DNA from: Camelus dromedarius
Taxonomy: Eukaryota
Reading direction: 5' to 3'
DNA length: 64,000 nt
Assembly (NCBI RefSeq): GCF_036321535.1
Contig: NC_087458.1
Coordinates: 3,782,001-3,846,000, forward strand
The notes beneath the pieces are model-generated. The model did no database searches. It worked only from the letters and a program-made list of their open reading frames with translations, and had not been told where the DNA came from. Both the position numbers and the translations under genes were made by a program. Shown in pieces: positions 48,071 through 51,000 of this stretch. Every line of letters starts with the position of its first letter. The stretch's first letter is position 1.

Positions 48071-51000
48071 ATGGCACTGTCTAAGAGGGAGCTGGATGAG
48101 CTGAAACCATGGATAGAGAAGACAGTGAAGAGGGTGCTGGGTTTCTCAGAGCCCACAGTGGTCACAGCAGCACTGAACTGTGTAGGGAAGGGCATGGACA
48201 AGAAGAAGGCAGCTGGTATGTACCTTTCTGAACCTTTTGGCCTAACATATTAGATGACCCCACATACTGCTTTGAGTGTCGTCAAAATTCTCTTTGTTGG
48301 AAGTGTCTAAAAAAGGTCAGGCCACATTTTATTTTCTTTTGCATTATAACGGAAATAGCCTAAATAACTAGTTGTGCTTTTTCTCTTATTTTTTATGTTA
48401 TTTGTGACATATTTTGAATCTCAGACTGACTTCCTTTTACCACTACACTTAGACTGAGTTACCTAAATTAATACTTGCTCGGGAAATATGCTAAAGTCAA
48501 ATGGGTATATTCAGGTTCAGACTGACATCTAAACATATAGAAGTCTTTATAAAATACATGAGAAAAGTTGAGAGAAGTAGATTTTGTTCATGAAAGTCTC
48601 CTACAACTTGCTGTTTAGGGAAAGTTGGGGTGATTTTTGATCCTAAACTTTGATGCTCAACCTAAGCAAGCTTCTCTGGCTACGCTACTTCCTACTCCAG
48701 AAAATTATAACTGTGTTTTTACTTCATAGGACAAGGTCATTCAGTGTAAGAGAATTTATGAGAATCCTACAAAGAACTTAAAGTGTTTCCCTCCCTCCTG
48801 GGGATAAAATTCCAGTGTTGGTAGCTGTTGTATGCCTCATATTGGACTAAGTACTCTTATCTTTTCATCTCTACCACCTCTTTTTTTCCTGTCAGACCAT
48901 CTGAAACCTTTTCTTGATGATTCTACTCTCCGATTTGTGGACAAATTGTTTGAGGCTGTGGAAGAAGGCCGAAGCTCTAGGCATTCCAAGTCTAGCAGTG
49001 ACAGGAGCAGAAAACGAGAGCTAAAGGTAGGTTACAGTTAACTATCTGATAAGCTCGGAGTGTTCTGAATGGTAACAAAGTTGCTCAGCTTACCTGGCTC
49101 ACACTTTAATATCTACTATTAGACTACCTAATATCTAAGAGAGGTAGACATTGAAGTAGAGGGGATGAGCTTGTATTGTCATCATCTTATGGTAAGGAAC
49201 TACCTAAGTTCATGGGTTGAAACATTCCAAGGAAACAATTGGTAGCTTTTCCTTTTTTTTATAGTTAGGCATTTTGGTTCTCATGTTTCCCTATTTCACT
49301 GTTTGTTTGTTTTTTTAATAGATTGATTGCTGTAAGGTTTTATGCTTTGATTTACTTGAAGCCTAATAGATTGCTTCAGAATGTGACTTCACTGCTGCCT
49401 GAGCTGGAGATCTCATTGTTTGTTGCTCCTTTACAGATATTTCTCTGCAATAGACAAATTTATAGATGGGACACCTAACAACTATTGTTATTTACTATAT
49501 GTCTTGAGAGCCTACTGTTTGCTGCATAGCATATTGCTGATCATCTGACCCCTGCAAGTGGAATACTTAAAGGGACCGTCATTACTCCCTAACCTACTTC
49601 ACTTTTTAGCCTGTAGTTGCTGATTGGTCATGGCCTCTTTCAATATTAGCAGCGTCAAGGAGCTGATCTGTCTCTTTCCTCTGATCCTCTCAAAAAAAAT
49701 CTTTTCGGTGACTCCCATCAAACCTTCCAAAGTGCTTTCAATTCCCTTGACTATCCTATTGCTTTTCCTGAGGCTCAGAAGTGAGTAAGCAATGTTTGCT
49801 GAGTCCCTGGCCAGGCTATGGAACCAAGAGAAACAGAGATTCCTGTGCCCTTTGATTAGGGTGTTGTAGGGTTATCAGAGGAACGAAAGATAGTCCTTGC
49901 CTTAAAAGAACTTGCAGTTTAAGATTTGGGGGATAGGAGGGCACAACAAAATACAGTTACAAATTATAAATTCTGAGTAGCCGTTTCATGTAAATTTTAG
50001 GCTTGACTGTAGAATTTCCGACTTACATTGAATTTTGTTACGTTCAGGGGGAATGCTTGATCCATAGTATGCAAAGATCTTTAGAGTGAAGATTATGCTA
50101 TGATAGGGCATGCTACCATGTAAGTGCTGAGGGCCTGCTGTGAGTAAAGTGACTACATTGGGTGGGATTAATTAAAATGGTTTCTTGAAGGAAGTATCTA
50201 GATAGCCTTGGGATTCGGGTCCCATTTTGGTCCATTCAGGNNNNNNNNNNNNNNNNNNNNNNNNNNNNNNNNNNNNNNNNNNNNNNNNNNNNNNNNNNNN
50301 NNNNNNNNNNNNNNNNNNNNNNNNNNNNNNNNNNNNNNNNNNNNNNNNNNNNNNNNNNNNNNNNNNNNNNNNNNNNNNNNNNNNNNNNNNNNNNNNNNNN
50401 NNNNNNNNNNNNNNNNNNNNNNNNNNNNNNNNNNNNNNNNNNNNNNNNNNNNNNNNNNNNNNNNNNNNNNNNNNNNGTTCCCATTGTTTGATGAAAACAA
50501 AGTGTTATTGGGGAATACTGAAGAAGAGTGAAAACCCCTGTCCTGGAAGAGCGTACACTCTAACTGGGAGAAAGTACGTACTAACATTGAAAGACTTAAC
50601 ACTTGGCAAGCAGAATATCAGCAGTGTAACTTTACCTAGTGTGAATCAAGCTCTTAAGTGATAAAAGGATGTGAAACAACAGTTTGATCAGAGTGGGCTG
50701 AAATTATTAATGAGGAAAACTTTCCTGGAGGAGGTGAGTTTTAGGCAGGATTTGGACTGGGGGTTGTGGAAAATTTGAAGGAGATCATTACAAATATGGG
50801 CAGTAAGATTTGCAAAGACCTTGAGATGGGAACATTTATAAGAACGTGGGAATGAAATTTGTTTGACTGGAGTAAGAGAATAATTAAGTTGGGTGAGATG
50901 GTCCTTTTGGTGGAGGGTCTAGAAGACTCTGGGCAAAACCACAAAATGCTATTAGGATGTAGGATTATTCTTCCCTTCTCCCATTGGCAGGGATACAACT

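Follow-up and report, generated by a model that had tools for sequence, protein, structure and literature searches.

In 2007, Lareau et al. and Ni et al. are said to have described highly conserved or ultraconserved poison exons in the genes of SR proteins and hnRNPs. Core components of the spliceosome reportedly followed: Saltzman et al., in 2008 and 2011, are credited with an autoregulated exon that carries a premature termination codon (PTC) in SNRPB, the gene of SmB/B', along with other events in core-spliceosome genes in which alternative splicing is coupled to nonsense-mediated decay (AS-NMD). A related case is that of PRPF39, whose poison exon is controlled by TRNAU1AP, a trans-acting RNA-binding protein (RBP) bound in the flanking intron (PMC11389820).

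The closest described system is found in PRPF3 itself. An alternative exon of human PRPF3, called 'exon 4' in the FasterDB numbering (neighbours 3:5), spans hg19 chr1:150300016-150300111, i.e. 96 nt, follows canonical exon 3 and precedes canonical exon 4, and is classed as symmetrical, with an in-frame PTC, under the label 'NMD/poison exon' (PMC8501971, NAR 2021). Its inclusion in human cells is seen both by RNA-seq and by RT-PCR, the RT-PCR products differing by 96 bp, while the NMD sensitivity of the resulting isoform is a prediction there (PMC8501971). Upon infection of resting B cells with EBV, the inclusion of this exon drops, with Delta-PSI of -0.10 to -0.26 (PMC8501971). No earlier reference for the exon is cited in that paper, and our own search of the literature on PRPF3 and poison exons yielded no other paper on the PRPF3 exon or on any PRPF3 feedback; the remaining papers that name both PRPF3 and poison exons are about PRPF39 or unrelated matters. 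Thus, the PRPF3 poison exon is already known and, since it has been annotated and validated in human, the dromedary locus considered here contributes just an ortholog.

The window analysed in this work is a stretch of 64,000 nt of the dromedary genome (Camelus dromedarius, contig NC_087458.1, positions 3,782,001 to 3,846,000), and all positions given below, unless assigned to another species, are those of the window. PRPF3 lies on the + strand, as do all the features of its exons 3 and 4 and of intron 3 discussed here. Its exon 2 occupies 48070-48172 and is followed by coding exon 3 at 48897-49026, which encodes residues 50-92 of hPrp3, with 43 of 43 residues identical to PDB chain 3jcr_K, and which ends in phase 0 at the donor AAG/gtaggt. 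Intron 3 (49027-51025, 1999 nt) contains a run of 236 N, at 50241-50476, which, as the earlier note had pointed out, is the longest of the six N-runs in the window. The run lies 550 nt 5' of exon 4. Because residues 93-141 seemed to be absent between exon 3 and the exon that starts at 52340 (exon 5, from residue 142), we suspected that canonical exon 4 was itself hidden under the N-run; this possibility was ruled out by an open-frame scan, which finds exon 4 at 51026-51172, with all its letters readable, a length of 147 nt that equals the span left for residues 93-141, an acceptor ccttag/GAA and a donor CAG/gttagt. The RT-PCR primers used on the human gene match exons 3 and 4 of the window. 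The published amplicons are 266 and 170 bp, and the skipping product counted from the window exons is 166 bp, i.e. 4 bp smaller, so that we use only the difference of 96 bp. The word share of RNA sequencing runs over the mostly intronic stretch 48030-52450 is 0.6-0.76, a range that does not separate exon from intron.

What the N-run is likely to contain can be judged from the corresponding intron of other vertebrates. Using the proteins as entry points, we reached and compared the PRPF3 loci of two teleosts (cod and perch), three birds, the alligator, the gecko, and one non-human mammal, the woodrat Neotoma lepida. In the woodrat, a single part of intron 3, positions 4634-4792, aligns to birds, namely to ostrich 4089-4248 (160 nt, 77% identity, E 2e-29), and this block also aligns to the alligator and the gecko. 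Between the ostrich and the passerine, the block is sharply bounded, with identity of 85-100% inside and 30-45% in the flanks; the ostrich block is 93% identical to that of the alligator over 217 nt and 98% identical to that of Anseranas. Inside the block, an AG and a GT that would delimit an exon are kept in six of the six species in which the exon was compared (woodrat, ostrich, Anseranas, the passerine Nesospiza, alligator, and gecko). The exon so defined is 96 nt long in the woodrat, ostrich, Anseranas, and alligator, and when it is read in the frame of exon 3, stops are encountered at codons 21-22 in each of these and, in three species, at codon 10; the remaining two frames are open in the woodrat. 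In the passerine and the gecko, where the exon measures 94 nt and 83 nt, respectively, inclusion would shift the frame instead. The conservation extends beyond the exon: 55% of the 60 columns immediately upstream of it are invariant across the six species, compared to 48% within the exon, so that the upstream columns, being conserved like the exon itself, point to regulatory intron sequence. As expected of a poison exon, both the exon and the adjacent intron stand above the intronic background in the orthologs. No block is shared by the third introns of cod and perch, and neither of these introns matches the amniote block, suggesting that the element is amniote-wide rather than vertebrate-wide. 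The origin of the element can be placed in the ancestor of amniotes, and its stop codons have stayed where they were; this observation is modestly new relative to the literature searched.

The sauropsid introns contain a second conserved box, located 30-180 nt after exon 3 in the ostrich, Anseranas, the passerine, and the alligator, and with its core kept in the gecko. Its reverse complement corresponds to the 5' part of the block, covering about 64 nt ahead of the 3' splice site of the poison exon and roughly the first 33 nt of that exon. The predicted energies of the duplex are -109 to -132 kcal/mol, as compared to -68 and -80 kcal/mol for shuffled controls in the ostrich and the passerine (z -7 to -8). 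Among the 119 predicted pairs, 73 are invariant, 13 show one-sided changes, and 1 shows a compensatory change, so that the duplex is supported by conservation and complementarity and not by covariation. A pairing partner for the block was not found in the woodrat, and, in the window, the readable region after exon 3 and the readable flanks of the mask show no pairing with each other (z ~0). The pairing of the sauropsid element with a box beside exon 3 is, again, modestly new relative to the literature searched.

Turning back to the dromedary, the nature of the N-run has to be considered before anything can be projected into it. The run carries the label 'gap of estimated length', which, taken literally, would make it a genuine assembly gap whose length and position have nothing to do with conservation. 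Against this reading, the flanks of the run are collinear with the woodrat intron, window 49729-50238 corresponding to woodrat 4139-4625 and window 50477-51178 to woodrat 4865-5566, and the spacing between the aligned flanks is 238 nt in the window and 239 nt in the woodrat; hence, the run appears to be a mask of true length, within about 1 nt, and not an arbitrary gap. Furthermore, the lengths of all six N-runs are multiples of 4, which gives them the look of a rule-based mask, and the other five coincide with conserved coding exons, four of them demonstrably and one by inference. Specifically, residues 476 to ~509 of hPrp3 are absent where the N-run 57665-57836 sits, residues 548 to ~612 are absent where the N-runs 59117-59288 and 59530-59661 sit, an exon of APH1A abuts the N-run 12770-12901, and 11805-11984 is, plausibly, the expected place of the next APH1A exon. 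Taking these data into account, we consider a genuine gap extremely improbable and regard the N-runs as a mask that marks very high cross-species similarity; the supposition to this effect in the earlier note fits all six of the runs. The accompanying statement that the intron 3 run is the only one without a coding exon holds insofar as this run covers no canonical exon and four others are located at coding exons, and is no more than plausible with respect to 11805-11984. An origin of the masked sequence from repeats finds no encouragement in the window, where no repeat family links the flanks of the run to the rest of the region.

By the same flank alignment, the masked stretch matches positions ~4626-4864 of the woodrat locus (L006), that is, the amniote-conserved block of intron 3. 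The counterpart of the 96-nt exon, found at positions 4679-4774 of that locus and at 4135-4230 of the ostrich locus (L004), would then fall at 50292-50387 (±2 nt) of the window, wholly within the mask, with about 51 masked nucleotides upstream and about 89 downstream. It appears quite probable, therefore, that the masked run hides the dromedary ortholog of the known human 96-nt PRPF3 poison exon, its presence, limits, and stops being projected from the alignment of the flanks to the woodrat. Conservation by itself is no proof of splicing, and one could envisage that the mask covers a conserved element of a non-exonic kind, such as an intronic enhancer, a splicing silencer, or an unannotated small RNA, which is never spliced into dromedary mRNA; the upstream intron, with its slightly larger share of invariant columns than the exon, would be compatible with such a role. 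A purely non-exonic element, however, hardly accounts for the retention of the AG and the GT in every one of the six species together with stops conserved specifically in the frame of exon 3, nor for the inclusion seen in human by RT-PCR (PMC8501971), and the Rfam search of ostrich intron 3 (E <=1) matched no RNA family, neither snoRNA nor miRNA. This possibility is, accordingly, rated as very unlikely.

A different exon had been put forward in the earlier note, namely a frameshifting poison exon of 334 nt that runs from an acceptor at 50239/50240 to a donor at 50573/50574 and is stopped by TGATGA at 50489-50494. The three signals are indeed present. The acceptor-like AG (50238-50239, ...ccattcag/G, pyrimidine tract 0.76) abuts the left edge of the mask, and the donor-like GTACGT (50574-50579, AAA/gtacgt) agrees with the consensus at 7 of 9 positions; the woodrat keeps both the AG at the left edge and the GT of the donor, and it has TGATAA at the place that matches TGATGA. 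The arithmetic also holds, 50489-50240 being 249 nt or 83 codons and 50240-50573 comprising 334 nt, with a remainder of 1 upon division by 3, and the frame of TGATGA follows from it only with the exact length of the N-run, where a difference of 1 nt, like that between the woodrat (239) and the window (238), is possible. Yet the donor has been degraded in the woodrat to GTACTA, with the loss of +5G and +6T, in the bin of the flank that has the lowest conservation (local identity 0.43), and the flank 50477-50573 as a whole (identity ~0.77) does not exceed the remainder of the intron in conservation, which makes the 334-nt exon unlikely, TGATGA then being intronic and without a role. Moreover, 8 of the 96 GT in the readable part of intron 3 match the donor consensus at 7 or more of 9 positions, and 14 of the 128 AG are preceded by a pyrimidine tract of at least 0.70; sites of equal quality thus recur about every 220 nt, and the proposed ones are at the level expected by chance. 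Above all, the human exon is symmetrical and 96 nt long (PMC8501971), and the AG..GT pair conserved in the six amniotes lies inside the block, where it likewise yields 96 nt. The exon of 334 nt is, in our judgement, highly improbable. What survives of the earlier proposal is the kind of element, a conserved, stop-carrying cassette exon in intron 3 of PRPF3, which is borne out by the human paper and by the six amniotes, whereas the proposed limits are in all likelihood incorrect.

The AG at 50238-50239 could, at most, serve as an alternative 3' splice site. Combined with the hidden donor at about 50387, a start at 50240 would give a 147-nt form that either replaces or alternates with the 96-nt one. 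The mask begins exactly at this acceptor, and the woodrat shows a corresponding AG (tract 0.71), from which the same donor would yield 147 nt with 4 in-frame stops. This AG has no counterpart in birds or in the gecko, however, the pyrimidine tract is better at the downstream acceptor (0.76), and the form annotated and validated in human is the 96-nt one; we consider the 147-nt form unlikely.

The consequences of the favoured 96-nt exon can be sketched, as far as they may be read from the projected sequence. A cassette exon of 96 nt, flanked by about 50 nt of conserved intron upstream and about 90 nt downstream, would be spliced between exon 3, which ends in phase 0, and exon 4, so that translation would run into stops at about codons 10 and 21-22 of the exon. 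A transcript that includes it would encode the N-terminal 92 residues, with the PWI domain, followed by a short tail of about 9 residues. The first of the projected stops would be located some 66 nt upstream of the 3' junction of the poison exon, which is farther than the 50-55 nt set by the distance criterion for NMD, and exon 4, exon 5, and further exons come after it, with at least 10 further junctions downstream in the window. Because of this position of the stop ahead of the junction and because of the many junctions downstream, the inclusion isoform would be expected to be cleared by nonsense-mediated decay, and the output of PRPF3 would be lowered.

When this element is compared with the systems described above, the human PRPF3 exon and the element that occupies the equivalent of the mask in the woodrat and the sauropsids agree in gene, intron, and properties, with a length of 96 nt in four species, and the orthology of the human exon to the masked letters of the window follows via the alignment of the woodrat flanks. 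With the poison exons known from SR proteins and hnRNPs, it shares the nature of a PTC-carrying cassette in the gene of a splicing factor and a conservation that reaches into the flanking intron and, at the DNA level, exceeds that of most coding exons of the gene, whereas autoregulation of those other genes has been established experimentally. The identity of the PRPF3 element between mammals and sauropsids, about 75-77%, is uninformative on the identity within mammals to which the strict definition of ultraconservation refers (at least 200 bp identical in human, mouse, and rat). SNRPB, as the gene of a core snRNP protein with a conserved alternative exon that introduces a PTC, provides the natural model for the proposed feedback, which, unlike the situation with PRPF3, where nothing comparable was found in the literature searched, has been demonstrated for SmB. 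PRPF39 resembles PRPF3 in that the poison exon resides in the gene of a spliceosome-associated PRPF protein, and that exon sets the level of the protein; it differs in being another exon of another gene, whose regulator is a different protein and not its own product (PMC11389820). Since the PRPF39 exon is driven by TRNAU1AP, autoregulation is not the sole option for PRPF3: inclusion may be controlled by PRPF3 or the tri-snRNP, after the model of SmB, or by other RBPs that act on the conserved flanks, after the model of PRPF39 and TRNAU1AP.

A more specific proposal, which we find rather doubtful, is that the exon is a homeostatic sensor of the tri-snRNP (U4/U6.U5), its inclusion being set by the abundance of PRPF3 or of the tri-snRNP. 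In sauropsids, such a sensor would be gated by a long-range RNA duplex of about 100 bp, in which the box 30-180 nt past exon 3 would pair with the branch site, the 3' splice site, and the first ~30 nt of the exon; in mammals, this device would have been lost or replaced.

The protein encoded by PRPF3 is an essential component of U4/U6, and retinitis pigmentosa (RP18) results from dominant mutations in the gene. The case of this gene indicates that N-masks are able to flag ultra-conserved non-coding exons. The poison exon is a conceivable target for splice-switching oligonucleotides. It could also account for the lower PRPF3 output that has been reported in quiescent human B cells. The conserved poison exon would represent a built-in dial for the dosage of PRPF3.

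When the stretches of N in the window are considered together, namely 11805-11984 (180 nt), 12770-12901 (132 nt), 50241-50476 (236 nt, in PRPF3 intron 3), 57665-57836 (172 nt), 59117-59288 (172 nt) and 59530-59661 (132 nt), they appear to be very conserved DNA that was masked according to a rule, rather than assembly gaps, since the length of each of the six is a multiple of four and five of them lie over conserved coding exons (for one of the five, 11805-11984, the exon is inferred). PRPF3 exons 2-7 are unmasked, including exon 2 (48070-48172), where the PWI domain starts, and the protein that they encode is the same as in human wherever the two were compared, that is, in exons 3 and 5. 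Therefore, the masking threshold must act at the level of DNA. Elsewhere in the window, two neighbouring genes can be read in the segment 6500-13300: exons resembling carbonic anhydrase 14 occupy about 6.9-8.6 kb on the plus strand, while APH1A lies at about 11.8-13 kb on the minus strand. The order of these genes matches that of the human 1q21 region.

Across 48030-52450, which is mostly intronic, 0.6-0.76 of the sampled words are present in several small RNA-seq runs of about 0.5-1 Gb each, labelled "reproductive system metagenome" and organism A. This share is far above the expectation for DNA contamination at such depth, which suggests that unspliced or intron-retaining PRPF3 pre-mRNA is abundant in those samples.

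Within intron 3, the part adjoining exon 3 stands out: when window positions 48890-49123 are aligned, jointly with exon 3, to the woodrat PRPF3 locus (L006:2770-2999), identity reaches 87% across the first ~100 nt of the intron, as compared to about 70-76% in its remainder. The segment could be a mammalian regulatory element next to the exon 3 donor. No complementarity was found between these ~100 nt and the readable flanks of the mask. The right flank itself (50477-50596) shows modest complementarity to 50680-50834, about 200 nt downstream; with a duplex energy of -62 kcal/mol and z of -3.3 against mononucleotide shuffles, this local pairing is weak and may be due to chance.

In sauropsids, a long-range RNA duplex is predicted between a conserved box just 3' of PRPF3 exon 3 and the poison-exon region, where the arm that is reverse-complementary to the box comprises the upstream intron, the 3' splice site and the first ~30 nt of the exon. 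The arms pair 1786-1957 with 4041-4266 in ostrich (L004), 1622-1792 with 3797-4023 in Anseranas (L008), 1565-1728 with 3188-3411 in a passerine (L005) and 1785-1906 with 3865-4081 in alligator (L007); in gecko, the core of the box lies at L009:2649-2699. Energies range from -109 to -132 kcal/mol among ostrich, Anseranas, the passerine and alligator; for ostrich and the passerine, the two species compared with shuffled controls, z was -7 to -8. The duplex was also looked for in the woodrat PRPF3 locus and is absent there. In sauropsids, it is likely to be an ADAR substrate and may gate the inclusion of the poison exon.
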